64,000 nucleotides of DNA from Bugula neritina (taxonomy: Eukaryota; Animalia; Bryozoa). The notes below the pieces were generated by a model, which did no database searches, was not told where the DNA came from, and saw only the letters and a program-made list of their open reading frames with translations. The stretch is from the NCBI GenBank assembly GCA_964035545.1, contig OZ037766.1, positions 24,978,126 through 25,042,125 on the forward strand. Reading direction: 5' to 3'. The translations under genes were made by a program, and so were the position numbers. Positions within the stretch are counted from its first letter, which is position 1, and the number at the start of each line of letters is the position of its first letter. Below are positions 468-62,857 of the stretch, in pieces.

Positions 468-1085
468 TGCATAGTATATAATAGATAATTAAAACAACTA
501 GAAGTAATGGCTATTTTTTCAAAAGTTTTTACAATAGCCTATCTCTTTGCTGTTATTAACTACTATAATTAAGGTTATAGCGGAGCAAATTATTTTTAAT
601 GAATGGCTAAAGATTTATAGAACTTGTTTAGTCTTCATACTAATAATTTATAGAAATAACATGAGGTAGTCTAGGCTTGATATTCACTACTATTTTTATT
701 TCATTTTATTTTTGGTTTGTAGGAAAGTAAAACTCGTAGGCTATATACAATTAAATAGTTTTTCACAAGTAAAATATTCAAGTGTTGAGTGCGTAAATGC
801 ATACGCGTGTATTACATTTCATCAACAAAGTACATGGATAAAATCGGAAGTTAAAATATACATATGTATAATATATAAAAAGGATTTGCGCAGGCACAAT
901 TATTATTCTCTAATCAATAAACAAGAACTAGTAGAAGTAGGAGTTGTTTACTCATTTACGTATAAAATTTGAGAGAGTACGATTCTAATAAAACAGGCTT
1001 TGAATGGCTAACAATTTTACTGAAACTTCGAGAATATGAGAAGATTTGATGTTTTTAATAACTAATTATCTTATTTGTTTTATAG

Positions 1086-4000
1086 AAGAAGTTAAAAGTT
1101 TTGCATATTTAAAAGTTCCAAAAACTGGTTCCTCCACCATGTACACTATATTATCAAGATTTGCACTGGACAGAAAATTGGATATTATAACGCCAGATCG
1201 CCCAGTCTACCTCTTTTTAAATTCTCCTGGAAATAAAGGAAAAGGTATTGTTAACAAATTATTTGATTATTTAATAAATTTCTCAGCTATGCTTATGGAT
1301 AAAATTCTAGTACAATGTGACTTTAAACTTGTCTTATCCAACTTGAAATGTTCTATAGTAATATTTTACTTGAAATATATATAGTAACTGCATGCATGTA
1401 TTATATTACTATATCAGCAGTTTGAGCCAAAGAGAGTGAACTTTTGGTTTCATCGATTTTTTAAGAAAGATCAGGAAGTGTTTTTTCGCACTGATTTCGG
1501 TTCTAAAAAAACTTTAGAGTACCTACTAATTTTAGTGCTTCATTTTTTTATATAATTAGTCTTATATGTAAGTAGAATGCCAAAAAAACACTGCACAATC
1601 AAACTTTTTTAATTGGGCATCTTACTACAATTTCAATCATTTTTATTTTGAAATTGACTGAGAAAAATAAAATAAGATTGGATTAACTGATAGTTTTAAA
1701 AATAAAGCACAAATATTATTATAATTACTTATGTACTCTAACTAAACAAACAGGAAATTAATTTAGGTTACTGTTGAGACTTTAACTATGGAAACGACCT
1801 ATTATATTGATTTATACTTGTTCAATGTAATTTGTAATAGACTTTACATTTTTACAAATAAAATCTGAATAAATAACATGATGCACGATAAACCTAAAAA
1901 ATAAGCAGGTTTATAGTAAGCAGATTGCTCATTTTTGAAGTCAAATTCAAGAAAATAATGACAATCATGCTTATTAACAACTACAAGTTTGTTAATTGGC
2001 TTTCGATATTTCACGGGATTTACCACCAGCTTTATATCCAACTATGCATTAACTATTTAATCACTAATTTCACTTGAGCTTTCGAGTGTAATGAAGATAA
2101 TAGTGAGGGTGCACTTAAGTTTAGGTGACTTGGCAAGAAAGCGTGGTGATTAGGGTACAACATATTATACCCCTTTGACCCCTTCTTACTTCCACCACTG
2201 ACTGCAACTATTTTAAATAAAATGAAAAATTATGAAGCGTTATTTTACCCCAAAACATTGTATTTGCTGTCTTTTTACAGTTAATATTTTTATGAAGTGC
2301 AGTAAATAGTAAGCAAAGCTAAACAATTGTTTAATAATAATTTATGCAAAAATTAGCTGACTTAATTTTGTTTTGTGGCCAATAATTATGTTTGTTAATT
2401 AATATCATCCACATGTAAGAAATCCACAGCAGATTTTGAAGTAGAAGATTAATAACTGCAGATTGTTTCAAGCTGCACTGCACAGTGGAGTTGCATAAAA
2501 TATTTGAGAAGTATAAAATAACTTTTACGGTGTATTAAAAATAGATTATATATAGCTGCTGCAAAAACAATACCCATCACTATGAATGTTAGGCTAACAA
2601 CTCTTTTAAATTTTTATTAACCTATAGCTTTTATTTTAAGCAGACATATATTATAAAAGCATAACTATAAATTGTGATCTATCAGCATCAAAAGATATCT
2701 TGAATTATTTTATCTGGTATATTTCCTCTAATTATTTTACAAATAGTCTGGAAAATAGGTCCAAAGAACCACTCAAAAGGAGATGCGGTAATGCACCATG
2801 CTATCTATAAGGATTATCTCTATGACAAGTATTTGAAAACAGGATATAAACTCATAGTGTCAGTGAGAGAGCCAATTGCCTGGTTCAAGTCTGCCGTTCA
2901 ATTTTATCGTAAAGAAGTAAAAAACAAGGTAGATCACAACACATCTCACTATTACACAATGCATTCAGTTATGTATGTTCTTTTATATCTATAAACTATA
3001 TTATAAAGATTAAATAGAAAAAATGTATGATAGTTTTAAAAAAGCTAATTTTTTTTGTTTTTAGAGTGCAGAAGAAATCATTCTTAATTCAAAATATTTC
3101 TCTGAGAAAAGAAGACTGTTTCATAACAGACAACTTCATTATTTGGGATTCAATAATCCCTATGGGAGTTTCAACATGAGTAAAGTGAAAGATTTTATAG
3201 TAAAAATTATCAACAGGTAAATTGTACCAAAATTTAAGTATTAAATTTCACAATTTATTGTTTCAGTAAGCTTGGAAACCAAAGACACCTTCAATAGTCA
3301 AAACATGTTTTTGAAACTCATTGATATAATATTTGATTCTACTAATTCCAAATTGGATATTGTTTATTCACTGTAACAGTTATATAAGTCTAATCACGTT
3401 GATATTTTAAAACTCTTATTACTGTAAACAATTTACCTTATTTGTGTGCCTTTGAGGTATTGTTGTGTTCCGAATGTGTGCTTATATAAGCAAAGGCCTT
3501 GTGAACAAAATATCAGCTTTAAATTAGTAGGTATAAGTGTTTGTAAGCTGAATAAGATGTAATTGTTCTAGACTTCACTGACCCATATGATAGGTCAAGT
3601 GCTAGAGTAATTATCTAACATGGTTACGTAAATGACTACAATGTAATTGCTGGCACCTGCTTGTTGATCTAGTACAAACAAATTGTTTTTAAAAGTAAAC
3701 TTGCGACAGTTTAGATTGCTTTGCACATTTTTATTGCGTGCATATATTTTTAAATTTTCAATTTGTTATTTATGGCATCAGTCGAGATTTACAGCTGTTT
3801 GATATTAACAAATAGAGAAGTTTACTGCAAAATATTAAAAGAAATTTTGCTAAGCATATAGATATATTTAAGTTTTAGCTTATTGCCTGTACCAGTACCT
3901 ATAGTAACTAAAGCATTTTTTTTTAATTTTTTTTTAAACCTTTGTGGTTTTTATATAATATAGTAAAAGTTTCCATGATGAAGTGCAAATATTTATACGA

Positions 4001-4955
4001 TCTTTCTGAAAGTGAAGCTCTCTTTTAGGACAGACATAATTATACTTAATGAACAGTATGATGCATCTTTACTAATAATGATGAAAAGATTTGGCTGGAA
4101 ATATTCTGATTTATTTTACAACAAGATGAGAGTACTTAACACTTATAACAATTCACTTTCCAACAAAGCTATTGAAAAGCTGCTTTCAAAAGAGTATAAT
4201 TTGAGAGATAAAATATACTATGAAGAGATGAATAAAACTTGGTGGGCTCAGCCAGAACTTGGAGAAGAAGGCTTTTGGGATGAGGTATTCAATTTTAAGT
4301 TATGTGCTACAGCTCTAACAATGTAATAATATACATATACAATAATATCGTTACATGAAATATAATGTCAAATACGCATGAGTAAATTATCTATATTAAT
4401 TTTTATAATAAGCTGTTCATAAAATTTTATGTTTGTCTACACTGTGTGGTATTAATAAAAATAATTATTTAGTTGTTCACATCAGGTAGTCTATGGCTAG
4501 GTGACACCACTTTACAAGTAATTACATGATACCACAACTCCTATAAATACCATAGAAACATCTTCAATAGAATTTAACGTTTTATCTCTGCTTTGAACCT
4601 TTTGTTTAACATATGAACATTACTTAAATTTCTTGACTACTCAGTTAAAATAACCGTTGAGCTAGAAATTTTCAGCAACAATTTGAACTGTTGGAATTTT
4701 ATAACTAATATACTGTATTAATATACATTAAATTATTTTTTACAGGTAGCCTATTTTACTGCTCTTAACAAAAGAGTTATGTCAAATGAGTGTCTAGATG
4801 TACTAAAAAACAAACATCCCATTATAATACCTGTTACACAGTACCACGGTAAACTCAATCTTACAGTCATTATGTGCACAAGATTATCAAAAGAATGGGG
4901 AGGTCTCATGGATTGTGTGATCAACTATGTTTTTCAACGAAGAAATCAATGCTAA
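1086..4955 (+). CDS. Galactose-3-O-sulfotransferase (GAL3ST/cerebroside sulfotransferase)-like gene, 5'-partial; exons 1086-1244, 2747-2928, 3065-3216, 4029-4284, 4746-4955
   Basis: Five GT-AG exons join in frame to TAA at 4953-4955. They contain the 5'-PSB motif YLKVPKTGSSTMYTILSRFA, the 3'-PB motif VSVREPIAWFKSAVQFY and the family-like segment IILNEQYDASLLIMMKRFGW. The start codon and transmembrane exon were not located. Confidence 0.85.
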
Positions 4956-12300: not shown

Positions 12301-15300
12301 TTATAAGTTATTTTAACATTTACAATATATATTCTTATACAAAAGATGAATAATATTATTATCATTAAAATTGTTTTAAATTTTTTACATCTCAAAGCAC
12401 TTGTGGTTGCATGAACTGTGCATTAAGTAATAGATCTTACATACTAGGATGAAAAAACATTGTCTAGTATTTTTATGCAGCTCATATTATAATATTTCAG
12501 CTTTAGATTTTGTGAGTTACACTTTTAGGTTCTCTTATTTAATTGACATGCATTATAACATCAATAAAAAGAAGAGTAGATGAGAGTAAAGCAGAGAGTT
12601 GGATAATACAGTCTATACTTTATAGTCTATACTCTGTACTCTGCACTCTGCACTCTGCACTCTGCACTCTGCACTCTGCACTCTGCACTCTGCACTCTGC
12701 ACTCTGCACTCTGCACTCTGCACTCTGCACTCTGCACTCTGCACTCTGCACTCTGCACTCTGCACTCTGCACTCTGCACTCTGCACTCTGCACTCTGCAC
12801 TCTGCACTCTGCACTCTGCACTCTGCACTCTGCACTCTGCACTCTGCACTCTGCACTCTGCACTCTGCACTCTGCACTCTGCACTCTGCACTCTGCACTC
12901 TGCACTCTGCACTCTGCACTCTGCACTCTGCACTCTGCACTCTGCACTCTGCACTCTGCACTCTGCACTCTGCACTCTGCACTCTGCACTCTGCACTCTG
13001 CACTCTGCACTCTGCACTCTGCACTCTGCACTCTGCACTCTGCACTCTGCACTCTGCACTCTGCACTCTGCACTCTGCACTCTGCACTCTGCACTCTGCA
13101 CTCTGCACTCTGCACTCTGCACTCTGCACTCTGCACTCTGCACTCTGCACTCTGCACTCTGCACTCTGCACTCTGCACTCTGTACTCTGTAAGTTATGTA
13201 ATCAAACTAATTGAACTTTATTATAGATACGGTATAAACCAACAGCACAAAAATACATAAAATATTGTGTATTGGTATATCATAATTTCACTTTCATCTA
13301 AAAAAACAACAATAATTGTGTCAATCTTGTATGCTATTTTAGAAAAACAATAGTAATTACCACAGCATAATATATTAAATTAGTTATGATCTCTGCTATG
13401 GAACATATGCAAACATGTACATAAAAATTTACCTACAAATAGCTGAATTCACTCGCATTATAAGTCTATAACTATTGGTACCGCAGACCACAATCTTTGC
13501 ATATATACAAACAATAGATTATAAATATTTGATATAATCTTTATTTAAAGAAAATGTCTTACGTTTTAATAGTGAAGTTCAGGAGTTGTCTGCTGCAAAG
13601 TTTATTTTTGCCTACAATTCCAGTGTTTTATTGTTTCAGGGACCATTAGCTTGTATTGCTATTGGCTACAAGACAACAGAGAAACAGCCAACTTGGTATC
13701 GCCTTAGGAACCCTGATACCGGAGAACAGAGCTTTCCAGATGATATTTCAGGGCATTACTTGGGTAGGACAAGTTTAGCTGCATGTATATATTATATTTA
13801 AATTGCCACCAAATACATAGTTTTTATAATGTAATAAAAAGGGTATATATAACAGCTATTCCTAAAATTATGTTATTGGTCACTATAATATATTCCAAAT
13901 AATATGGTGATTCTCACAAGTTTAATTTTCAGCAGATCTTTTAGCAATGAATAAAGCTGGCTTAATTGGCTTGGGTTTATAAATTTAGTTTTGATATACA
14001 TAGATTAGAAAACAATTAAGTTGATAAGTGTGTATTTAATTTGGTTGGAACATACTATTACTGGTTTTGAATATAGTAGGCTACTTATATTTAAACCATT
14101 ACTTTAGTAAAATCATTTGTCATTTCTAAAACATTACTGTATACTGTATACTGTTGGAATAAATAGCTCTCGTTCATCTACATCCTGTGTAAGGTAGTCT
14201 GCATAGTAAAAGATGGTGTGGATACATTAGGGGTAACGAGGGGGGGGGGGCACAACGGCCGAATTTTGCATTTGTTGCTCTCATTCGTCTGTTTTTCAAG
14301 TTACTAGTTCAATAATCTCTAGTCTTAATGCTACATCTGTTGTCTATTACAGGTATCAGTTTGTTGTTTCTATCTCTTTCACAACTTTCAGAATAACGAA
14401 ATTTTCATGACGAAAAAATTGGCCCATTGTGCCCCGGTACCGAGGTACAATGGGCCACTGGGTGGGACACAACAAATATATGGAAATTTTGCGTATTTTG
14501 TTATATCTAATCTTTATTTATTTAATAATACAAATAAATAAAGATACTCTTTCAGATCTACAGCAAAATTCATGTTTTAGCCGTAGAGTTTGTGCCACTA
14601 CGGATAGCAGTGGGAGGCAAAATCAAACGCATGTCACTCGGTTCTGCAGTGCCATTATCATTACTGTTTAAAACTAAAAATGTTTTGTTATTTTTACTTC
14701 AGAGCAACGTTTATTAAAAAAAAACTTTACTAAAATGTACTACAAAATTCTGAGTGAACTTTTTTCAATGAACTGTAGCTAAGGTGCATGCATGGCTGAG
14801 GTTTGTGACTGGAGTACGGATGGGAGAGGGGGGAGCAAATGAGCAAATCACAATTTATTTCAGTCAAATGCATGTATATTCCCTCAATGGTGTAATATAT
14901 AATGATTATCATGACTATCTACTAGTAGCAACAGCAGAGTGTTTTGTATTATGTATAAAATTGCAAAGCTTCAACCTCACCAGATGTATGTATTAGGAGA
15001 GCTTTAACTTGTAGTTTTGTAGTCTTACCATGATGTCTTTGATATTTTACAAAAAGGTCAGAAATGGCTATATCTATAGATTTTAGTAACATTTCAACCA
15101 AATTTTTGGGCAAAGAAACTAATAACAGTGATCAGGGTGCAATAACCAGGTGGTCCATTGTGCCCCGGTCAGCGTGGCCCATTGTGCCCCGTGTGGCCAA
15201 ATTGAAAATAAATGTGCCTCAAGGAAAATTCATTTCAGTGTTTGCTGTTATAATAGTTAAGCATTGTAGAGACAAGCAATGGCAACAATATTAGTAAAAT

Positions 15301-17836: not shown

Positions 17837-18104
17837 ATTTACATTAACCTAGATTTTTACAAATGTGACATTGTATCTAATCCACCACAGCAGTTTCTTT
17901 GTGTGAGAAACACATTTAAGTCAGTATTGAGTACTAGGTGCCCCCAGTGTGGGTATTTCATATATGTGGTTTTGTGGGTTTATGACAGATGAAGTTATTG
18001 GTACCATAATATAGAAATAATGGGCCTTTCTTGTATATTCGTTGCTTTCTCTGATAATGTGCCACATGATTTTAAATTCTACAACATTTTTAGTACTATT
18101 AAAA

Positions 18105-18127
18105 CACAGGATAGTTAAGGGCAACCT
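18105..18127 (+). repeat. Left terminal inverted repeat of the large transposon
   Basis: CACAGGATAGTTAAGGGCAACCT is the reverse complement of 29041-29063 with one mismatch. Confidence 0.9.
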
Positions 18128-20065
18128 TTTAGCTGCAACTGCCTCACTGAGGTTTGCATTGTAATCATATAAGAATTCAGTACCAGTAAAATAAAATCTC
18201 CCCTAATTGTGCTAGAGCCAAAATTTAAAAACTATGTTGTAGATCTTCTTTTTCTTCAGTGCAACTTTTTTGGAATTTTCAATTTTCACTTTTTTTGCAA
18301 AGTTATAGACAAAAAACTGCCCAATTTTGGCCAATTTTGGCTGAAAAGCTGACTTTTCAGTACCAGTAAAATATCTCAGCAGTAAAACATGATATCTGAA
18401 TAAAAATTGCACGGTTGGAATCCTGAGATATTTCTCCAGTGTAAGTTTTTTTATTTTTTCAATAACCTTACTAGATTTCTCATAAATTAGTGATTTATAC
18501 ACTGAAAATGCTATATTTTTCCCTGAGGAATTAGCAGTGCGCATCACTTCGCGCTTCGTTGAACACGTAGAGGTGAGAAGACACCAACGCACTTATTACT
18601 AGTTACTAGCTCTCTGCTTATGCAATGCAATGTTGACAATGTTATGATAAGCTTTGAATGCGTGATTGTACTGATGTCAAAAGAGCGTGAGGATGTCGTG
18701 ACGCTAGGGGGAGAAGTAAACAATAACCTAATTTAGAAAAAGTAACTTTATCTAAAATTGCAGCATATTTCTTAAACTATTATTATTTAAATGACGTAAT
18801 ATAATTCATGTAAATACAACGCAAAAGTAAAAAATTAGAATGGGGAGTTTATATATTGAATGGGGGGGGTTATAAAATATGAAACATCCACTCCTGAACA
18901 TACTGAGACTTCAAGCAAATTGCTGTATTTATGGTGTAGTAAACTGTGGGTTATGAATGCAACTAGTGCCTGAACATACTCTTTGTGTTAGAGAGAATAA
19001 GCCAAGTATTTGAGTACAAATAAGGATAACCTTTATTGTATCAGATACAGCTTAGGGCCCAACTACCAGCGAGCTCCAGTAGTAGTCTGAACTATACTGG
19101 AAACTCGCCTGCTTTTATACACAAGAATTCACATCTAGAATGTTCCAACAGACAAAAGAAAGTTAAGCTTGACAGAAACAAAAGAAAAGTAGACAACCTA
19201 TGTATTGAAGGTATTCATAAAAGCCACACAAATTTCCAGTATCAGTATTAATGCAAAACGATAAAATAGCAAAAAGAGGAAATAACTCTGGAATGCGTAT
19301 TTCATGAAAATTACATTATACTGAAAGCTTTAACAACAATCACAATAATAAGGCATTAGAAAGCTAGCCCAACTTAGCTACAATTACAGCATTCAAAACA
19401 TACGCAACAGTAATTATAATAATGAGGATGAGAATCCATTACATTGGCTCATTATTCGCGACCTATACAGTGTACAAAGTGCGATAGCTGGGTACCGTCT
19501 GCGTGTTTATATTATTCTCACTCTCCAAGTGACAAACTGAGATTGGAATTATACAACAGTGAAAGTATTTTTTGTGGGACAGGGTAAGTAAATTTTTCAG
19601 CAAATACTCACATAATATTCATAGTGATGATCTTATAGTTATTAGTATTACGGCTAATACTAATAGTAATATATTAGTAACTTTTAATAATAATTTTTTA
19701 TTATTTACTATTAGTATTATTTTAATTTAATATAATGTATATTATTATTATAATTATTATTCATTAAATTTTTTATATATTTGTATTCATTTTGTTACTG
19801 GCAATGACGTATCTAATAAAAGTCATCAGCTATGAGTATCGACATGAGACTGAGTATCAGTATGAGTATCAATAACACTAACTGTAAGACTCATGTCATA
19901 ATATTAATCATAATGATGTTGAACTAGAACAAACATGTTTAGTGATGTTGAATTACACTTCAGAAAAAATAGTTTCATCTTTTGATATTGATTTGGTTTC
20001 ACCTTTAGGTTTATTTTTCTTAAAGTTAGAAAAAAAAATAGAAAAAAAGGATGCAAATAATTTTA

Positions 20066-21006
20066 TTATAGAAACTCATTAATTTGATTCAACCAATAAT
20101 TAATAATTTTAATCTTCCAATTGTCTTCTGAGTTACTTTCCATAGAAATCAGTCCTCTATCTCTGAACTTGCTTATGGTTTTTGCTTTTTCTTCTTCCTC
20201 TAATATTTTAACAAATTTCAAGAAATATGGCTTTACTTTATGGCTTGCAGATTTCAACATTAATTTATTAACGCAAGAGTTATGTTGTTTGAACCGGTGT
20301 TTAGCTGAAAGAAAGCTTTCTAAAATCGTTTTACTGTAAGGCCATAGACTCCTCATAGCATCTAAAATTGAAAAGCAACTGATTGCAAGTAAGGTGGGCA
20401 GAAATATATGCTGTAAAACACCAGGGTGATTCTAATTATTTCAGATTACATGTGAGTGCATTGGCTGCCCTGAAGTCATTATAGTAGCTGCATGGTTCTA
20501 TTTTCTAAATCTAAATGACTATAACTTATGTTACTGAAAATAAGTATGTTATATGTGTATGATAACCATACTTAAAGCAACGTACCAGTAACTGTGTTCT
20601 TTTGTTGAAGTTTCTTAGGCAAAATGCTTGGTACCTCTGTCTGGCCTGCCAATTTAAAATAATTTTTTCTTAGTGTATTTGATGTATTTCAAATTGATAA
20701 GTAATTTTAAAATTGGGAGGCAGCATCTAAAATTACTTACATTGTGTCAACAATGGTACAGCACACACATATGAAGATTCATCAAGCTTCTCATCTGTTT
20801 CATTCAAGGTATTGGATGCAGAAACGGCAATAGAGTTCTCTACTTCTTTATGCTTGTCCTTTGCCAAACTACTCAACACATTGCTTATAGCAGGCTTGAT
20901 TTCTTCATATTTTCTTGACACTGTTAAAATTTTATCAATAGACATTTTAGGCAGAAGAAAATTATTGCTCATTTTTCAAATTGCTTGTAATTAACATATA
21001 AATAAC

Positions 21007-21065
<59 letters not shown>

Positions 21066-24000
21066 TTCAAAAGAATATTTTACCTTGCTTATCAGCTGTC
21101 TTCTTATCTGTCAGCATGTCACACAAAAGTGGAATTTTTAATGAGTTTTTATTTCTGATGCAAAACTCCCAGCTTGTCTTCAGCATGTTGTTAATGTCTT
21201 TCATGTTTCTCGATCTAACAAAAAGTTTTCTGGTGGTTACCAAACATGTTAAATAAAACGTACTGCTTAGAATTAATAAAAATTAGATAGTAGCTGTTCA
21301 AATTTTGTATGCAATTTTTTTCAAGCTAGGACATGCAATTTAGATTCAAGTTGTAAAGAATTTCCATTTAATTTTCTTCAAGTGGAAGCTTATTTTCTTT
21401 AATTAATTTTATTTTCTTTGATTAATTTTTAGGAAGAAACAGTCTACTTTTGTTGTATGATATATACAATATATGATATATAGTGGTATATAGGTAGTTA
21501 AGATATTTACCTGAAATGAGTTAATATTGGCCCTGAATTGTAGTTGTCTGGGCAGTTTTTTCCATCCTTGAACTCTACTCCCCCATCATGTACCTTGAAC
21601 CAAACTCCTTCTCCAATTTCTAGAAAGTCAGCAATTCGTCGGAAATGGTGAAGTGTTGCTGTCCTATGAGCTTTGAGGAAACTAGTGTAAAAATAGTGAT
21701 AGACTTTTAAGTAGCATATTTGCCTGTGTTTAGTAGCAATATCATACACAACAAAGTAGCTACTATTCTTACTTATCAGACAGTGACCTACTTGTTTGAG
21801 AATATGGTGTTATGTCCTAGGCTAAGGCCACTACATGCATTGGAGATAGTGTGCTCCTGTCTGCCGTAGCTGGTAATGGCATCATCAGCAGCCTTTCTTT
21901 CTACCACTATTCTAAACATAGCACTTGCTATAATACTTTGCGATTTTCTATTGGAGCACCTCAGCGTTAGTTCCCTAAAACAATACTGTTTTCATAGATC
22001 ACAGTAATATTATCAGGGCTGAATTTAAATAGATCTGAGTTCTTTCTACAGCACCCCTATAGTAAGCTATTTGCATTCATTTTCAAGTGAGTGGACAAAC
22101 TTTGCATAAATTCCTGTTGTACTAGTATTATTTTTTAGTACGCACCTTAGTTTATAAAAGTGCCTTTCAGCGTGTTCGGCTACTAATGATCTGCCTGAAA
22201 CAAGTCTCAATGTTTCAGGCAAGTGCACTGAAAGGCAATGGAAGGGCATCCCAAACATAGCGCGCTTGGTGCAAGTTTCTGGGTTTTCAAATAGTTCCAT
22301 GCACTTAATGGCAAAAAGAAAACTTTGATTATATGCCCTGAGGATTGTTCTAGGACATCTATTAGTGTCACACATGTATGCCAAACTTTGCAGCTCTGTC
22401 AATGCTGCTAGCATAACGTACATGGCTCTCCCATCTTCAGTGTGCTGGAAATCTTGTAGCATGATGGTGACTTTTACCAAATTAAGCCGGCATTCTGTTC
22501 CCTTCATTTCTCTATTTTGAGCTATAATTCATGTTTGTATAGGTTTATAATTGTTTTTGAAATGGCTATTTAATTTTGATATAGACAATATTGAAAATGT
22601 GTGTTAGCAATTTCTACTAGCAAGTTAGAATCTCTACTCACCTTCAATGTCTGAAACAAGATTGGTCAATTTTTCCTTGAGTTCTTTATTCTTTGCAGCT
22701 TTAGGTAGTTCTTTTAAAATTTTGTTGATAACATTTTTTAGATCATGTAATGGTTCTATTGATGAAATTTCGTAGCTGCCTATATCGATCTGTGATTCCA
22801 GCTTAGTACAAAGAAGAGCAGGAGGCCTTTTCACACCTGTAAAGTAGGTATTTAGAAACTTATGTGAGACCAAAGTTATATTCCTAACTAAGTTTTTCAT
22901 AAAGATTATATATACATGTGTGCGCCCATAGTAGCTTGTGTGTGTATATACATAACAATGAATCGCTACTTTCACTAGATGCAAAACTAAGATTGGATGA
23001 AGATTTATTCTATGTTACTATGGCTTCATGCAGCCCATATTTTTTCTATGTATCTCATCCGACAACGCTGTAACCACATATAGTTTAAACTTATCATTCT
23101 AAATTTTCTGACCTTTTAGGCTAACATTCAAAATTCTTCTTAGCCCTGAAATGTTCTCTGCACTTGAATAGGCAACCCCTCTGTGAAACAATTCATTCCT
23201 GAGCCCTTCAGTCTGAAAAAGTGTAATTATTGCTGCTCATATATAAATGTATTACATGGAAGTGCCGTTTCTCCCAACCAGTGTTTATTTATAACTCAGC
23301 TTAATTTCATACCTTCATTGTCTGAAAGACTGCTAGGTTCCCTTTAGTAAAACCATCTTCCCATGTTTTTGTCTTATGGAGCAGCTGAAGGCGGTCTTGT
23401 GAACTATAGAAAGCTCCTTCTTGGCTATATTTGCTAGTGTTACTGAAGTAAATGTCTTGGGTGCCACACATACATGGGAACATTCCTGAACATACATATG
23501 CATGTTTTTATCAAGTTTCATCATAAATAATATAGTTTCTTGTAAATATGTATTCTTTTTGGGGAATTTATACATGGAATAAGTCAAACACGTATTGTTA
23601 TTATTGTAGCAAAAGCTATCTTGTATTTCATCCTGTGTAAACAATTTATAGTTTATCACTCTTACCTCCACATTGCTGCCCAGCTTCTAGTTGCCTTGCT
23701 GGACTATCACCAGAAAAAAATCTTAGTTTGTCAGTAAATGTTCGTCCATCTTTTGAGCTAATTTTTTCCTCCAATTCTCTAAGGTCTTCTAGTCGAGTAG
23801 GAACATAAAGAAGTTGATCCTTAACGGAAGAGTTGGATTGGGCAAGTAGATAGATGTAAGGTGATTCCACCACTGATTGTACATTGACTGGTGTTTCCTG
23901 AATTAGCATAAAGTAAACATTTATGTTTCAGAATATTTTGGTGTATTTCAACATTTGTTCTTTAAAACACCTAGTCATTAGTAATTGCTGTTACCAAAGA

Positions 24001-27000
24001 CTAAACGACACTTGTAATACTGTAGTGAGAGCTTGGCTTATTGTAGCAACTTTAATTCAAATAAGATGACCCTAATTGAAATGTGTTCTATATTGAGCTT
24101 GCATAATTCTATCAGCTTACTTTGCAGTTCATCTTTGAAAACTCTCCATCTGTATAGTATGTACATGGGTCGTACAAAAACCATACCATGAACAAGTAGT
24201 GGCTTTTACCTGAAAAAAATACATATAAGATATATTGGTGAACAGCTTGATTATGTAACTAACATTTCTTTGTACAAAAATACATGAATAAATAAATGTT
24301 TACCAGCAATTTCTGAATGGTCATGCCACAAAACCATATGTCTACTTTGCGAGGCTTCTTTAAGGCGTTCCTTGGGGCTGTCCATACTGCCAACCACTAT
24401 CCCTAAACATTTAATAGTAATTATTTTAAAGAATTGCATTCAATGTGATTGCGCATTCCAGACTGATTTTTTATGGTAGTTTTAGGGGGGACTGGGCAAT
24501 ATTCCGAAGGTGCATTAGTCCGAAAATTAGTAGAACTATTATTAGAACTAAAATTATTTATTGAACATAGTCTGAGCAACAGGAAGATCTGCAACATGGT
24601 TTTCAAATTTTAGGTTAGGTGAGGTTTTATTTGGCGGGCCTGAACTCTTATATACTAATAATGTTGCCCTCATCTACATGTCTTGTGGGGTTGTTTGGTT
24701 TGGTGTGCAGCTTTGGTTATTTAATTTCAGAGTAAGATGTTTATTATTTTTTGTCTCCAATGCTCGTATTTACTGATATTAAGAATACTAGCATAGAATA
24801 ATGCAGTTTAGCAGCTTACAAATAATTTTAGAGATTAAATATGTGATATTAAATAATTAACTGCCAAGCCAGAAATTTACTATTTCATTCAATACCAATA
24901 ATTTTTTGACGCCAACTTCAAATGCAAACTATTTTTTATAAAATACAAGGTAAACTTTTTCTAAGCTTATCATAAATGCAGTACAGTAGACCCAAAATGT
25001 TTGCTTCCTTTAATATTTTTTAATTTAGTTTTTCAGTTAATAGTCAACGTGTGAAGGGCCTATATAAGCTGACTGACTGTAGCTAGAATAGAATTGCAGT
25101 CGCTATAGCCATTGAACTGGATATTTTGAGTTCATTGCCTATAGCTGTCATTTTTACATGAGCTGTGAAATAAAAATACTTATTATATCACCCTTGCACA
25201 ACACTTCATACTTCAGTGAACACTTGGAGATGAAGAGAAACTAATGCATAGGTTACTAATTGCAGGCTTGCTAGCTGACAGGCTAGTGAATAGCTTGCTG
25301 TGTACTTAGTTTATGGAGCAGCCACAGTGGAATGTTGATAGATGATGGAGCCCTTAATTGAGGCAGCATCATAGCGTAATTTCAGGCTAAAAAATTACAA
25401 ACTTGTAGGCCACACGCACGCCACCCACAGCTAGCAATAATATAGCAAGATTGTGAGTAAAATTTATGATATTCTCAGTGATTTAATACTATATCTACCA
25501 ATTTTCAGACTAATGCACCTTCGGAATAATGCACCTTCGGAGCAATGGGCCTTTAGAATATTGACTATATTTACTTGGTCTTAGTCTAAAAAAGCTTATC
25601 TCTAAAAAGATGACAGAAATTTTGAGGCTTCTTTGATTTCCACAAGGCATGGATATATTGAGATAAGCCTTGCTCCACATTGCAAGCATTTTAGCTGTAA
25701 ATATCTTTTTTTGTTCAAATAAAGTTTTCTATAGCTATTGCAGCGCTAGTTTTGATTTATGTAGCTCATAAATCTCAAAAGTCATAGAATGTTGTTCATT
25801 ATGTTAAGAAAATCAGTATCATTTATTTGTAGAACAAGTTTTAAAGACAAATGAGCCTCTGGATATACTTAATTCAAATCCTACCATTTCTCTCCAGGAA
25901 AGCTAGTGAATCTACTACAGACATCTTTTCTATGTCAGCTGCAGATCTTAAAATCTTCAGCTTTTCCATTCTGGCGAGATGATCTCTCCGTATGTTTAGA
26001 AGAGAGAACTTTCTACCAGATACCTCTTTTTTAGATTTGACCTGCAAAATTAAAGAATGATATACCAAATACTTTAAATAATAACTAGATAAAGTAAGAA
26101 ATGATATTATCAGTCCTTTATACTTACTGTAACATAGTACAAGTGTGCTGAAAAGCTCAGTTATTGACTTTAGGAGTAATCAACCTACCAATGTGCCATT
26201 TGATTGAACTTGTACAGTCTGGTATTCTATTGGTACTATGGCTTTCCCAACATCAATCTCTCCGTTGTCTATCATCCGCTTTTTCTTTATTTTTAGCCTA
26301 GTTACAGAAGCTTTTCGTTTGATATTTAGACTGAGATTTTTGTAATTTAGCCATGATATTCGGGTTTTTGGCTTTCTTTGTACAGGATGCTTCAAAACAT
26401 GTTCTGCGACTTCTTTCATAACCTGGTAAACAAGTCAATACACTCCTGTTTCATAGATGATAGATGTACTACATTTGCAAATATTACTTTTGCTCAACTT
26501 CTATGACATATATATTATGTGTGTATGTATGTATATATGTAAGTATATATTATGTGTGTGTATATATGTCAGTATATATTATGTGTGTGTGCAATTTATG
26601 TTTTTGGAAGATCCATCAAAGATGAAATAAAGTAATGGTGATAATCTTGTCAAACTTTTTCTGCATAGATAACATATTTAAAATAAAAAATGGTAACTCT
26701 GTCAAAAAAGTAATTAGCAGCAGTAGTTACAATTTGATTAAGTCTTACCTGGCCTGCGTTTCTGGGAGCTTTATTGTTGGCATTTTTCAAGTTTGCTGAC
26801 TTGCTTAGAGCAGACCAATTTATGTCCTCATTTTCTTTTAAAGCTGATTTTACAACTATTTCATTGAATGTATAATCAGTTAGTCTGCCGGTGTGTGATT
26901 TCTTTCTGTTTTGCCTCATTTCACCAAATGATCGTTTTCTTTGCACATCCCACTCTGATTGTGATTGCTTAGATGCATAGAGCGATATGAAATCTTTATT

Positions 27001-27618
27001 AGTGGTTTCATCATTCATTTCATCATTGGCAGACTTGATGATGGCTCTGCGAACCTTCTTAGGGACTGCGTCAACTGTCACTGCTTTACGCTTTGAGCCA
27101 ATAGATAACTTTGCTGAGAAGGGTGTTCCTTTTAATTTTTCTGTGACTGGTTTTATTACATTTCTAACAAAATCATCCACCACAGTAGCAGTTATTTCAG
27201 TCGGTGTCTTGTCCAATACAGCTTTTAAAGAATTCAAAGCAGTTTTAGCAGGAGTCTCTAGATGGCATTTGTTGCTTCTTTTCATTATCCACATTGGTCT
27301 ATGGTTTTCAGCGCATTCTAGGCAATTATTGTAGTTGTGCTTTAGTTTACTTGCTGCTGACAGCTTCTTGAAGTTTTGAAATGAGAAATAGGAAACAAAA
27401 TTATCTTTTTCTTTCTCCTTATTATTATTAACGTAGGATAGGGCGTTATTGAAATGCCTACTAGCTTGCTTTCTTTTTCTACTATAATCCTTGGCAGTTA
27501 ATCCTTTTGTGACTTTAAACTCTCTGTTGAAATGCTCTACTTCAGCACCTGATTTAAGGTGTATAAAGTAAATTGTTGCTAAAAATCCACACTGATTCTC
27601 ATTGTAATCTTTCCCCAT
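20066..27618 (-). CDS. Intron-containing DDE transposase (RAG1/Transib/CMC-like core), ~1181 aa; exons 27618-26749, 26422-26189, 26041-25885, 24402-24304, 24209-24121, 23897-23666, 23485-23313, 23212-23113, 22836-22642, 22521-22146, 21974-21792, 21681-21511, 21214-21084, 20920-20741, 20645-20586, 20361-20066
   Basis: Sixteen GT-AG exons with compatible phases sum to 3546 nt with no internal stop. Motifs: WHDHS (D1), RFFSGDSPA (D2), FPCMC, EPLHDLK and FHCLSVHLPE...AEHAERHF (HxxxxH plus E). The last three exons are less certain than the core. Confidence 0.8.
21008..21065. repeat. Compound (TA)n(TG)n(TA)n microsatellite in a transposase intron
   Basis: Directly visible in the sequence. Confidence 0.95.
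24497..25565. mobile_element. MITE nested in intron 3 of the transposase gene
   Basis: CAATATTCCGAAGGTGCATTAGTCCGAAAATT (24497-24528) is inverted at 25500-25531 (30/32). Further tandem copies of the ~15-bp AATGCACCTTCGGA unit follow. The exact ends are uncertain. Confidence 0.7.
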
Positions 27619-29040
27619 GGCTATCTTGTTTGTAACTGAACTGAATAACCCTGCACTGAGTCAGAAAAGGCGCAATTTTTGTATTTTAGTAATTCCAAGC
27701 AGCAACTGCTCCTACGTAATGCAACCACAAAAACAACAGGTTGTGTGGGTCTGGCTGTAGCAAATATTAATTGTAGCTATCGAAAACAGCACCCTAGCTA
27801 ATTGTATGACCACAATGGGTTAAGGCAGAATTTAGAAGTTTTGATGTGACTGTCATAGCTCATCAGCTTAAAAACCAAATGTCTGTGGTTTAATTCCAAA
27901 TTTGGGCAACAAGTTTTATAATGGAAAGTTTATATATAAGCATTGTTGATTAGCATTAGTTTAAGTTTTGCATTTTTTATTTTTATATCAATTAAAATTT
28001 TTGATATTTTAACCTAAGCACCCATGACTTAAATTCCTAAATTCCCTCTATTATAGTGCGTAGACGCACCAACCTAGTTAAATTACCAATTAACAAGTAA
28101 ACTACCATCACTGAAGTCAGCTTCTTACAAGGTTCAAGTGGCTCCAGTATGTTATTTATTATTTTCACTACACTAGTTAAATGTTAAAACAGATAATTGA
28201 TTATGAAGTGATGTAGTCACAAGGCCATAAAACATCCTTACACCCCCGTTCAATAGAAAGATTCTTTAAAATATAATATAGTACACTGCCTTACACTAAA
28301 CAGCTTTGAATAATCTGTAGTATAGATAGCAAAATAAAACTTGAATCTAAAATATGCATTGTATATGTATGTTTGGGATAGAAATTAGCCGTAAACTCAT
28401 AACCATACTATGTTTCTCATATTGGTATTTTTCACAATGCTACCTTACTAAGCAGGGCCACTGTGTTTGATGAGTCATATCATCACTATTTGCTGCTTTG
28501 ATTAAAAAGATGTAGAACTAGAACTGCCTTCTCTCACAGAAAGTGTTACAGTCATGCCAATGGCATCTATGGATAGAAAGCTAATAGTCAATAATCTCAA
28601 CCTTAGTTTAAAAGGGAGTACAATTTAGATTATTTGTTACATAGCCATTCTGAAAAAATTTCCCAAAAGGTAACAAGATTAAAAAAGTATTGAGGGCTTT
28701 TGTAATCCAACTGGGTAAAACATAATAATTTAAATTGATATAATTTCAATCACCAAATAGTAGGCTTATTATTGAGCTGTAACTTGATGAGAAGAGAATG
28801 CCATGTTGTAATACATGCAGCCTATGATAAATTGATGATAATTAACCACAGACACTGAGCAAACTCAACATTGACTGCACAAATAATAATAATTCGAAGA
28901 GGTGCAGCTCTAGTAGATGTGGCTGTTTATTGGTCACGGCTAAACCTCATGCTATATTATGATTAGTAGGCAACACGCACACCACCCACAGAGAAATAAT
29001 AATTAAGAACTGAGACTACAAATTCATCATATTTATGTGG

Positions 29041-29063
29041 AGGATGCCCTTAACTATCCTGTG
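29041..29063 (-). repeat. Right terminal inverted repeat of the large transposon
   Basis: AGGATGCCCTTAACTATCCTGTG. Confidence 0.9.
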
Positions 29064-32000
29064 AACATCAAAAAAAGTTACAATCTGTTTCAAAAATTTT
29101 AATTAATAATAAAATTCTCACCAAGATTGTAGAAGCAACAGATCAACAATTAAAACCGACAGTAAAAACAATGAAATGCTAATATATCAAGAGGTCAAGG
29201 GTCACTTAATGTGCTACCAGCCATGCACTAGTCATAATTATAGTAGAATATAACTATAAACAATAACATTTCAAGTGTTATTTTGGTTTAATGTGAGCAT
29301 TTTCTAGTGCTTAGAACATCCTGATCCTGTCAATAATGTGTCAAGTCCGTGTATAAAAAAACAATTCAAAAGTACAACAAGTATTTACATACTAGATTGG
29401 TCTTTTCAATGTAATGTAAAATAAAAGTAATTAATAGCTTTTTCATCAATTTTTATTTTCATTTTAGGCAAATCAAATACAGTTAAAAAAACTCTGACAA
29501 GATTAATTCATTTATATGACAGCTGTGATAGCTTTTATTTCATAAATTTATTTATATTTGAAATATCACCTTTTTGATGAGTGCCAATAATTGAACAACT
29601 TCGATCAGAGCTTATTGATGCAGTTTTAGTTTTCTGATAATTTATTATTAGGAGTATAATTTAGATTTTAAAGTGGTTTTATATATTATTCAACTAAGAA
29701 AAAGTTTAAAAAACAACTAATGCTGTCAACTAAAAATGCATTAAGCTGATCAAAATATATTTTTGTTTTTACCTTCTTCTGTCTACGTCAACGATGACCT
29801 GTGACCCGTGACCTAAAAACCATTATGCCACACAGTATAAGGCTACAAGGCTTATTATTTTGGTTGAAAATAAATCCACTATAGTGCATGCTATTGGTGG
29901 AACGTCGTGGCAATAGATTACACTGATACTATGCTTATCTACAATAAATATGCCCATCATCATACATTTTACCAGTGTGTGTCCTGACTTCGGTTAATTG
30001 TATGAAGGGGACATGCAATGAATTTAATCTATTGAAACACTCTAAATTTATATTTTAAAACTACTGAGAGGTCTAACTGACTGCTTGAGCTGCTGAAGGA
30101 TTAGCTCATGACTGAGAGTCGCACTGATCTGTGAAACACTCGCTGGTAGTGGTAGCTGGTAAGTGTCAAAGTTAGATGAAAACAACTACAATTATTACTA
30201 AGACAGTCACAGTATGACTACGAGTATGAGTATCACTATGACTATGAGTGAAGTTATGTAGTATTCTTTCTTGTTCCGGTTTGCAGTGACCTTATAGTTG
30301 TAATCATAACGTATGTATTACTAAGTCTAAGTCAATTGAATAGTCTATTGCCATAGTATAAGTATGTATTGGTAATTATTATTATCTAACACTTGACTTT
30401 TATTGTGATTGTATTTATAAATAAATATAAAACTGCTGTGTTTATTATAATGAATAATTACAATTATACTCATAGTTATAGCATAAGTATATAACTATAA
30501 GTGTTATATTTATTGGCTTCAAAGTTTGAGATTTTGGCTTTGTTCTAAGATTCTAATCTTCATCATATCTGTATCATCATGATCATCATATCTTTGTAAT
30601 ATTGGAAAAACTAATGTGTTCTTGAAAACTGCATACCTCAACCCGCTACACCTTATCCACCTCTAGCCCTATGTTTTTATCATAATTAAACAATATCAGT
30701 CTAAGTTTAAGAAACCATTATGATTATGATTATAAACTAAGTCTAAAGTTTTTGATAATGTAATATTTACATTTGAAGTTTTTATATAATAATAATTTAA
30801 TAGCTATGCATAACTTGAAAATAATTTTGATTAATTTTCATTTCGTATAATCTCCCACTAGGCCCAAGTATTGCTCTAACACCTCTAACTACAAGTCTAT
30901 TAAGGTGTTGCTCTGCTATCACTAATGGATTCTCAATTTTATATAAATCATATATTTGCATAATTTTCTATTTTTTACATATTTGTTTGCTTGCAAGTCA
31001 TTAACACTTTTATAAGTAGTCATTAATAATCCTATTGACATTCCGAGTCTTGAGGAAGGCCAGTGTTGTAGAAAAAGCGCAAAAAGTTATGTTCTCTTGA
31101 GATAATCTCGCGCATTCCAAATCAATATTTTTTCAAAAAATTGACTAAACAGAAGCTATTAAAATTTTTCCACTAATGCATTTAAATTTAAGATAAAATA
31201 TTAAACATATGGCAAAACCTTTTTAGCAATGATATTCAGGTTATTGCTGTCACAGCAGGGATGCTGTATGGTAAGGTTAAAATGTGTCCTGCATCCGTGT
31301 TATACATAAGCATTTGTGCCATTCAGCATCCAGCTGACATCATTACAAGTAAATGCTAAGTAACAGACTGATGATTCCCGAGGCAGAATTCAGCCTCTCT
31401 CCTTAAAATCAAATTCCTTTTCTGTTATGCTACTATAATTATAATATTGTCATCTTGCTTCACTTGTTGATGACCTGTTCAATGCAGTCTGTCATAATAT
31501 GCACTACAGATCAAAGGTGTCTCTAGTTGTTATGCACTTGACCAATTTTAGATCTTCATTGTCAAAACAGAAGAAAGCAGAAAGACTTAATGCTTCACTA
31601 GTTTTATAGGAGTTGCGTTTGGCAAAAATTAGCTATTTCATCATTGCAGTGTCTAGTTTCTAATTTTGGCTCACATATAATGTTGTTGTGGTTGGTAATA
31701 GCTAACAACAAAACAATATTTAGATGAGTTAGTTACTAAATATAACCATTTCAACATTTACCTAATCAATCATATATTTGTGGTGTTCAAAATCAACAAT
31801 GTCAAACAGAGTGACATAAAATACGTACAAACATACATATATGAAAATAGGTATTGAAGATAATTAATCTTGTTAGATCCTAACAATTTGTGTTTGGAAT
31901 TTGATTTGTTTTCAGAAAAACTTAATGTTGTGTGACGAAATGGAGTTTTGGTTTATAATTTTTTTTTTATATTTAGGAAATTAGGCCACTTTGTTTGTTT

Positions 32001-38953: not shown

Positions 38954-39081
38954 GAATGGTTCTGGGAGTGACCAGGTGCAGTAGTTTGGGTTCGTGAGTT
39001 TGGAGTTGGTGATTTATCGAAACCGAACTACAAACTACTGCACTCAGTCACCTCCAACTCGGAGCTGCTTATAGAACAGTA
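38954..39081. mobile_element. Degenerate relative of the 44722-44852 fold-back MITE
   Basis: It shares GTGCAGTAG...CTACTGCACT and CCAACTC(G/C)GAGCTGCTT(A/C)TAGAAC with that element. Confidence 0.6.
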
Positions 39082-39779
39082 TTTTTGCAGGTTAAAGCAG
39101 AGAGTTTACTATAATTATGCTATGCTTTCAGCTATTTGCAGCTGCTTTGCTTATTTGCTATCTTTTAATCAGCTATTAAAATTTTTCACACAGCTATTTG
39201 TGAAACCAATACATGACATTTCACAGTTATTGACCTATCTTTATGACCTTTAATAATAATACAACTATTGTGCCACAACTAAGTATTATTATATTATATT
39301 ATTCCAATGAATCACCACAAATCCTGGGTGTGTGTACTAAAGAAGTCAGGAATTTAAAGCAATATGTGTATTGCTCACAGTATATAATTTATAAGAGTAG
39401 TGTAGTGATAGTTATATTAATTACATGATTGATGTCTTTTGATGGATCCGTCATGATCCAATGATTATAAAATAAATTGTCTCTCTCCTATGCCAGCTGG
39501 CTCTATTCTTGTGCAAGAGCTCATAGAATACTCAATGAATCCTGCTGAGTTGCAGTAGTATAAAATAGCCAACCTCTAGACATAACATACCAATTAAACT
39601 TGGAGTTGCACTCATGGCATTCCATTGAGGGCTGGCTGCCTTAGCTTTGGACTGATGCCATATGATTAGGTCACCTTAGCCGGCTGAGGTCACATGCTGC
39701 ATACACCATTTGAGGGATTCATCTGGCTGCGATTGAAAGGAAGAGTGACACTACTGGATCTTCTATTCACGCTATAATC

Positions 39780-62857
<23,078 letters not shown>

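Follow-up and report, generated by a model that had tools for sequence, protein, structure and literature searches.

Target-site duplications (TSDs) of Chapaev transposons are 4 or 3 bp long and those of Mirage elements 2 bp. The CMCT clade, as described by Kojima (2025; PMC12730594), has as its hallmark cysteine and histidine motifs between the second catalytic aspartate (D2) and the catalytic glutamate (E); its elements mostly have 5'-CA..TG-3' ends and a TSD of 2–5 bp (PMC12730594). Transib/RAG elements are defined by a 5-bp TSD and by terminal inverted repeats (TIRs) that resemble recombination signal sequences (RSSs) (PMC1131882), and TSD length has been reported to be labile inside Transib (bioRxiv 10.64898/2026.08.26.747230). 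CNEST, from Cryptococcus, has been proposed as a superfamily of the CMC (CACTA/Mirage/Chapaev) group, with a 33-bp CACGG TIR and a 2-bp TA TSD (PMC12810828). Here we describe an element in a 64,000-nucleotide stretch of the genome of the bryozoan Bugula neritina (assembly GCA_964035545.1, contig OZ037766.1, positions 24,978,126 to 25,042,125 of the forward strand; hereafter the window). Our preferred reading, which we hold as probable rather than secure, is that it is a cut-and-paste transposon, autonomous and active in the recent past, of the CMCT clade, which takes in CACTA/EnSpm, Mirage, Chapaev, Transib and their relatives, and that it comes from a distinct marine-invertebrate lineage with C(A/T)C-N7-TTAAGG ends and a 2-bp TSD. 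Its extent, defined by the TIRs and by five more full-length copies, each with different flanks, is as follows.

18105..29063, minus strand: DNA transposon, predicted autonomous, full length, 10,959 bp
29041..29063, minus strand: 5' (left) TIR, 23 bp, CAC start, TTAAGG box at 11-16
18105..18127, plus strand: 3' (right) TIR, 23 bp
18103..18104: 2-bp TSD (AA), left copy
29064..29065: 2-bp TSD (AA), right copy

The two TIRs (CACAGGATAGTTAAGGGCA(A/T)CCT) match at 22 of 23 positions and similarity between the left and right ends stops after these 23 bp, in agreement with a first-pass annotation of this DNA, made from the letters alone, that had proposed a CAC-ended element of ~11 kb with such a repeat pair. 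The flanking AA duplication had been missed there. The conserved block of the TIR is TTAAGG at positions 11-16, which is kept in distant relatives; CACA is all that the TIR has in common with the Transib/RAG heptamer, and the 23 bp contain no RSS-like heptamer/nonamer structure (CACAATG, spacer, A-rich nonamer).

A 19-bp TIR probe found 628 sites in the genome compared with 0 for its reversed control. Some 300 TIR pairs were obtained, mostly 756-bp miniature inverted-repeat transposable elements (MITEs), which have 477 bp in common with the right end of the element at ~91% identity and only ~44 bp with the left end; given the match to the right end, we rejected the possibility that the 23-mer is the terminus of an unrelated small repeat. 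Six full-length copies, including this one, were found. Since they have different flanks, a domesticated single-copy gene was likewise rejected. Copies on C1, C3, C4 and C6 are 98.6-99.6% identical to the one described here and a second C6 copy is ~94.6% identical. The C1 and C4 copies differ from it at 5 of 3546 coding bases, with no gaps, and comparison with the 94.6% copy gave dN/dS values of 0.25 for the whole gene and 0.10 for the core. TSDs of 2 bp flank all six full-length copies and 13 of 15 MITEs, and their sequence varies: in this genome and in relatives taken together, eight dinucleotides were seen (TT, AT, TA, AG, AC, AA, CA and TG). Seven MITEs, mostly located in satellite arrays, allowed a check by empty sites: the site that follows from a 2-bp TSD occurs 1–88 times among the fetched loci; TSDs of 0, 1, 3 or 4 bp never reconstructed an empty site and were rejected. 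We conclude that multiplication of the family is recent and that its insertions duplicate 2 bp of the target, not the 5 bp of Transib/RAG. The earlier proposal of an intact autonomous element is supported by these data, to which recent mobility can be added.

Two further loci deserve mention. Many 756-bp MITEs are clustered inside a short-unit satellite region at G000:C1 ~14.9-15.6 Mb (L010-L026), and the full-length copy at G000:C3:1146574-1159371 contains an extra 1.76-kb insertion in which an older right end from this family is found.

Between the TIRs lies a single gene, modelled from its open frame, RNA junctions, a homologue profile and the splice sites of a sister family (see below).

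20066..27618, minus strand: predicted transposase gene, 16 exons, 1181 aa
27618-26749, minus strand: exon 1
26422-26189, minus strand: exon 2
26041-25885, minus strand: exon 3
24402-24304, minus strand: exon 4
24209-24121, minus strand: exon 5
23897-23666, minus strand: exon 6
23485-23313, minus strand: exon 7
23212-23113, minus strand: exon 8
22836-22642, minus strand: exon 9
22521-22146, minus strand: exon 10
21974-21792, minus strand: exon 11
21681-21511, minus strand: exon 12
21214-21084, minus strand: exon 13
20920-20741, minus strand: exon 14
20645-20586, minus strand: exon 15
20361-20066, minus strand: exon 16

When joined, the 16 exons give 1181 codons plus a stop with no internal stops, and all 15 introns are GT-AG, as the first-pass annotation had claimed; the motifs that it had listed also lie where it had placed them (WHDHS at residue 446, YDP at 466, GDSPA at 546, EPLHD at 679 and GEGVW at 926). 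RNA contigs from four studies skip the predicted introns exactly at 9 of the 14 junctions in the stretch examined (4/5, 5/6, 7/8, 9/10, 10/11, 11/12, 12/13, 14/15 and 15/16). Junction 13/14 is implied by contig arithmetic, the 534 letters that one contig has ahead of exon 13 being the combined length of exons 14 and 15 and of 294 letters from exon 16. The remaining four of that stretch (2/3, 3/4, 6/7 and 8/9) were not among the joints listed, and junction 1/2 falls outside it. Splice signals occur at the same positions in the sister family for nearly all exons, including the junctions unseen in RNA, and exons 2-13 are collinear along a profile of distant relatives. We conclude that a single protein of 1181 aa can be produced from one spliced mRNA and that the family is transcribed and spliced. 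Because most RNA contigs match this copy at 90-99% identity, they show expression of the family, not of this copy specifically.

In order to characterize the protein, homology searches were made exon by exon and the fold was taken from a model of a database relative, P0181 (residues 330-960, pLDDT 94), onto which the exons of the element map collinearly through the family profile; the joined exons served for the frame check and for residue numbering. The features recognized are listed below.

26749..27618, minus strand: exon 1, helical N-terminal region with F-x4-F/W-x2-L...H-x4-C-x2-C (H94, C99, C102), conserved in 45 relatives
24320..24322, minus strand: D448 (WHD), putative first catalytic aspartate on the first RNase H strand, exon 4; near-invariant, a beta strand in the relative's model
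23706..23708, minus strand: D547 (GDSPA), putative second catalytic aspartate, exon 6; near-invariant alignment column and relative's model
23466..23474, minus strand: C565-x-C567, putative zinc ligands, exon 7; invariant in a 70-row alignment
23113..23212, minus strand: SAP-like helical insert within the zinc-binding insertion, exon 8; weak for this copy itself
22146..22521, minus strand: exon 10, with H811-x4-H816 (putative zinc ligands) and the E832-x2-E835 helix
21084..21974, minus strand: exons 11-13, family-specific C-terminal domain (IADFL..GEGVW..F.DG..GP..HFR), beyond the RAG1-aligned part (model 1-525)

The element carries the CMCT residue set: D448, D547, C565, C567, H682, H811, H816 and E835 are invariant or near-invariant in 70 relatives, with the cysteine pair spaced as CxC or CxxC and with C-x(1-2)-C and H-x4-H lying between D2 and E. 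By analogy with the spacing in RAG1, E835 would be the third catalytic residue, and its position in the fold together with those of D448 and D547 suggests a two-metal active site. C565, C567, H811 and H816 would bind zinc in the insertion domain. The distance from D2 to E is 287 aa, a spacer lengthened by the SAP-like insert, which is recognized from its relatives: these match PF02037, the profile matches a solved SAP domain and residues 260-316 of the relative's model match 2do1. A hidden Markov model (HMM) search of Protein Data Bank (PDB) sequences returned the SAP domain as its only match, and Pfam scans of single exons returned none. The exon-1 region probably binds zinc and contacts the TIR or its TTAAGG box; a model of it (pLDDT 74.5) matched no PDB fold and nothing in the predicted-structure atlas. 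Neither end region of the element holds a conserved coding frame for a second gene, RAG2-like or TnpA-like.

Searched against the PDB, the P0181 model gave RAG1 as the best match (E 6e-10, Z 16.3, 417 residues, rmsd 4.8), with the ProtoRAG protein BbRAG1L at Z 14.4, HzTransib at Z 11.7 and P transposase at Z 10.9. The core of this relative is thus modelled as a RAG1-type RNase H fold with a zinc-binding insertion, in line with both the clade and the DDE core forecast by the first-pass annotation. In the predicted-structure atlas the same model matched CACTA (PF02992) and Plavaka clusters at TM 0.53-0.59, compared with 0.43-0.48 for RAG1 by another program; the predicted fold therefore places the element in the clan and not specifically beside RAG. 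A library of viral structures gave no match. Language-model scores against the core were weak (RAG1 0.87; CACTA/EnSpm feature score 0.89) and serve as a lead only. An atlas cluster labelled Bacteroidota (1042 aa, rank 3) also scored 0.89 against the core, which is below the reliable range.

These matches bear on the suggestion that the element is a divergent member of the Transib/RAG lineage, nearer the RAG ancestor than CACTA and with an atypical TSD. The best solved-structure matches are indeed RAG1, ProtoRAG and Transib, all with the RNase H fold and zinc-binding insertion (Z 12-16 over ~340-420 residues) and all with the order D, D, CxxC, H, H-x4-H, E-x2-E and a CAC terminus; the E-x2-E and H-x4-H spacing is that of RAG1, and the length of the TSD is reported to vary within Transib. 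However, RAG1 wins the PDB search by default, since no CACTA-type transposase appeared in the result lists, and the match to the CACTA and Plavaka models, albeit scored by a different program, is as good or better. The structural identity is 12-14% for RAG1 (7-14% across RAG1, ProtoRAG and Transib), HMM and Pfam searches gave no RAG1 match, neither the heptamer-spacer-nonamer arrangement nor a RAG2-like gene was found in the TIR and end regions, respectively, and D2-E spans 287 aa compared with 206-214 in Transib and 253 in RAG1. The protein size in the family (1000-1300 aa) also differs. We do not regard the element as a Transib/RAG member, a placement that would be very improbable on these data, and the 'RAG1/Transib-like' headline of the first-pass annotation was overstated.

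Its accompanying statement, that the layout departs from those of Transib, ProtoRAG, Chapaev and EnSpm, holds for every layout compared. CACTA/EnSpm and other CMC elements (Plavaka, ESTA, Mirage) have in common with the element CAC..GTG ends, a TSD that falls within the CMC span of 2-4 bp, a DDE core bearing C(2)C and H(3-4)H motifs and a similar predicted fold, but the family differs in its TTAAGG box, its SAP insert, its own N- and C-terminal domains and, in several members, CTC ends. Likeness to Plavaka is of shape only. Chapaev/Chapaev3 elements resemble it in their CMC-type core, CAC ends, large protein with an N-terminal zinc motif and marine-invertebrate hosts; the element, however, has a single H-x4-C-x2-C motif where the published Chapaev pattern has two modules (Chapa/NZD, RAG1 NZD-like), and its TSD is 2 bp rather than 3-4 bp. 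The comparison with Mirage covered TSD length, which fits.

Homologues are widespread. A search with exon 10 matched 420 representative proteins, with named relatives in scallop, mussels, oysters, pearl oyster, amphioxus, acorn worm, Nematostella and Exaiptasia, annotated as uncharacterized or hypothetical and with SAP as their sole recurring Pfam domain; the profile search returned family members only. A low-sensitivity search of prokaryote genomes and viral contigs found no relatives. One relative, an intron-less open reading frame (ORF) of 1262 aa, is carried by five 5.07-kb elements that are almost identical and have CTC..GAG ends, a 2-bp TSD in 5/5 and the TTAAGG box at positions 11-16 of the TIR, as in the Bugula element. 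When a TIR motif built with sequence of this genome and of one relative was applied to 10 further loci of relatives, both ends were predicted in 4, and one end was predicted in Nematostella; with shuffled flanks, both ends came up in 3 of 1000 trials. Three of the four loci with both ends have exact 2-bp TSDs. The element is therefore not a one-off but a member of a large, mostly intron-less marine-invertebrate family, whose signature consists of C(A/T)C-N7-TTAAGG ends, the 2-bp TSD, the N-terminal H-x4-C-x2-C motif, the SAP-like insert and the GEGVW tail.

In several mollusc and other relatives the core has no introns. All four intron-rich rows of an unrooted exon-10 tree fall, with short fragments, into one supported group of ten (99/97), indicating that the intron-rich form is one subclade; intron gain within it is the simplest reading, short of proof.

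The same genome contains a 12.4-kb sister family (TIR CACAGC..TTAAGGTC, TT duplication; G000:C6:7085149-7097590 and G000:C4 from 15502832). Its two copies are ~99% alike, have the intron positions of the element, carry the TTAAGG box and show 31-85% amino-acid identity to it per exon; in both, some splice sites are damaged or exon 10 is broken. At G000:C6:7079683-7082240 and G000:C5:6917383 we also noted apparently non-autonomous elements of the same lineage with CACAGT..TTAAGGTC ends.

The lineage is probably coherent and uncharacterized, though it may coincide with any of EnSpm-1/2_NV, Lanisha-2_StPi and CNEST. It could instead already be catalogued in Repbase, either as EnSpm (the long-branch EnSpm-1_NV and EnSpm-2_NV of Nematostella) or as Lanisha (Lanisha-2_StPi, coral). 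Repbase merges Chapaev and Mirage into EnSpm (PMC4455052), in the CMCT tree of Kojima an EnSpm pair from Nematostella stands isolated (branch 2.18) and the coral Lanisha is included, and the TIR motif of our family occurs in its Nematostella member too. On the other hand, no family member matched a transposase Pfam family: PF02992 (Transposase_21) was reached by none of 15 members at E<=1 and by none of ~150 precomputed matches, Plavaka PF18759 was missed even at E 1 and DUF4218 gave no Pfam match; genome searches with the PF02992 and PF12940 profiles were also silent, as were their controls, and are uninformative. A literature search found no paper describing this motif set. We judge an existing Repbase entry to be unlikely, if a serious contender.

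Membership of an animal branch of CNEST appears quite unlikely. CNEST elements likewise start with CAC, have a 2-bp TSD and a CMC core without Repbase hits, and unclassified animal relatives, including an oyster EnSpm, have been reported (PMC12810828). Yet the CNEST/ESTA TSD, by description, is TA-specific while eight dinucleotides occur in our family, the named hits of two homologue searches include no fungal or arthropod name, and crab and wasp, but neither mussel nor anemone, appear in the species key to the CNEST tree. The publications on CNEST and Lanisha contain no list of motifs.

We return to the reading of an autonomous CMCT transposon of a distinct lineage. Several points weigh against it: the RNA contigs may stem from a different copy or individual; the fold is that predicted for P0181, not for the spliced product; 'unnamed' means absent from Pfam, NCBI names and searchable papers; and enzyme activity is predicted from sequence, with hairpin chemistry and domain roles being analogies to RAG1. 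With somewhat more doubt than conviction, we further suggest that the lineage is an undefined superfamily-level CMCT branch across cnidarians, molluscs, amphioxus, acorn worm and this host, with its own ends, 2-bp TSD and two unclassified domains.

As to mechanism, a single protein would most likely bind the ends and then nick them by two-metal catalysis. Its N-terminal zinc/helical region may read the TTAAGG box and the SAP insert may add a non-specific grip on DNA; excision could proceed through a donor-flank hairpin as in RAG/Transib, and strand transfer would use a stagger of 2 nt. Non-coding elements that share the TIR, the 756-bp MITEs as well as larger ones, were probably moved in trans.

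In animals, the CMC side of the RAG1-fold clan has received little study, and no solved structure from that side appeared in our result lists. The elements of this lineage are young and intact, carry one gene each between short TIRs and could be reconstituted directly; they also provide an outgroup for studying how Transib/RAG acquired its target stagger, its end recognition and its need for RAG2. The lineage assigns a likely function to many 'uncharacterized' proteins of mussel, oyster, scallop, anemone and amphioxus, and to TTAAGG-box MITEs. One subclade appears to have gained ~15 introns yet stayed mobile, which, if gain is the right reading, is a clean case inside a transposon. Should the branch prove to be of superfamily rank, its young copies, including the intron-less 5-kb single-ORF versions, would allow a first biochemical and structural study of a transposase with the RAG1 fold outside Transib/RAG and would reveal how a RAG-type core makes a 2-bp versus a 5-bp stagger.

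Two other features lie within the element.

22742..22843, plus strand: internal exon of a spliced antisense RNA
24496..25532, unstranded: ~1-kb high-copy insertion in intron 3, with its own 49-bp inverted repeats

The GT..AG joint 22843-25833 of the antisense RNA was seen in all four RNA runs. Its upstream exon ends at 19583 (a loose end in run X9 maps to 19553-19582, ahead of a GT donor) and its next exon starts at 25833 and extends to 26290. No frame over 62 aa was present in the pieces checked, which argues against a RAG2-like partner; we can only guess that such RNA from the right end could dampen the transposase by silencing. In run X3 an antisense RNA has a different upstream exon, with no match in the element or the fetched loci. 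The intron-3 insertion, at a contig depth in the thousands in run X1, occurs in all six full-length copies and partly resembles the left subterminal DNA of the family; the sister family is without it, and intron 3 there is ~350 nt.

Elsewhere in the window, a 5.7-kb segment with 44-bp inverted repeats (39035-44769), in which a 786-bp segment with 54-bp inverted repeats (42207-42992) is nested, probably represents two other TIR elements. Among the host genes is a formin (56064-58904, plus strand); its FH1 exon is poly-proline, with a 36-bp tandem repeat, and Pfam gave a hit for FH2. Exons of a galactose-3-O-sulfotransferase-like host gene lie at 1040-4323 (plus strand). A simple satellite with a 7/14-bp unit at 12476-13400 gives rise to spurious repetitive ORFs.

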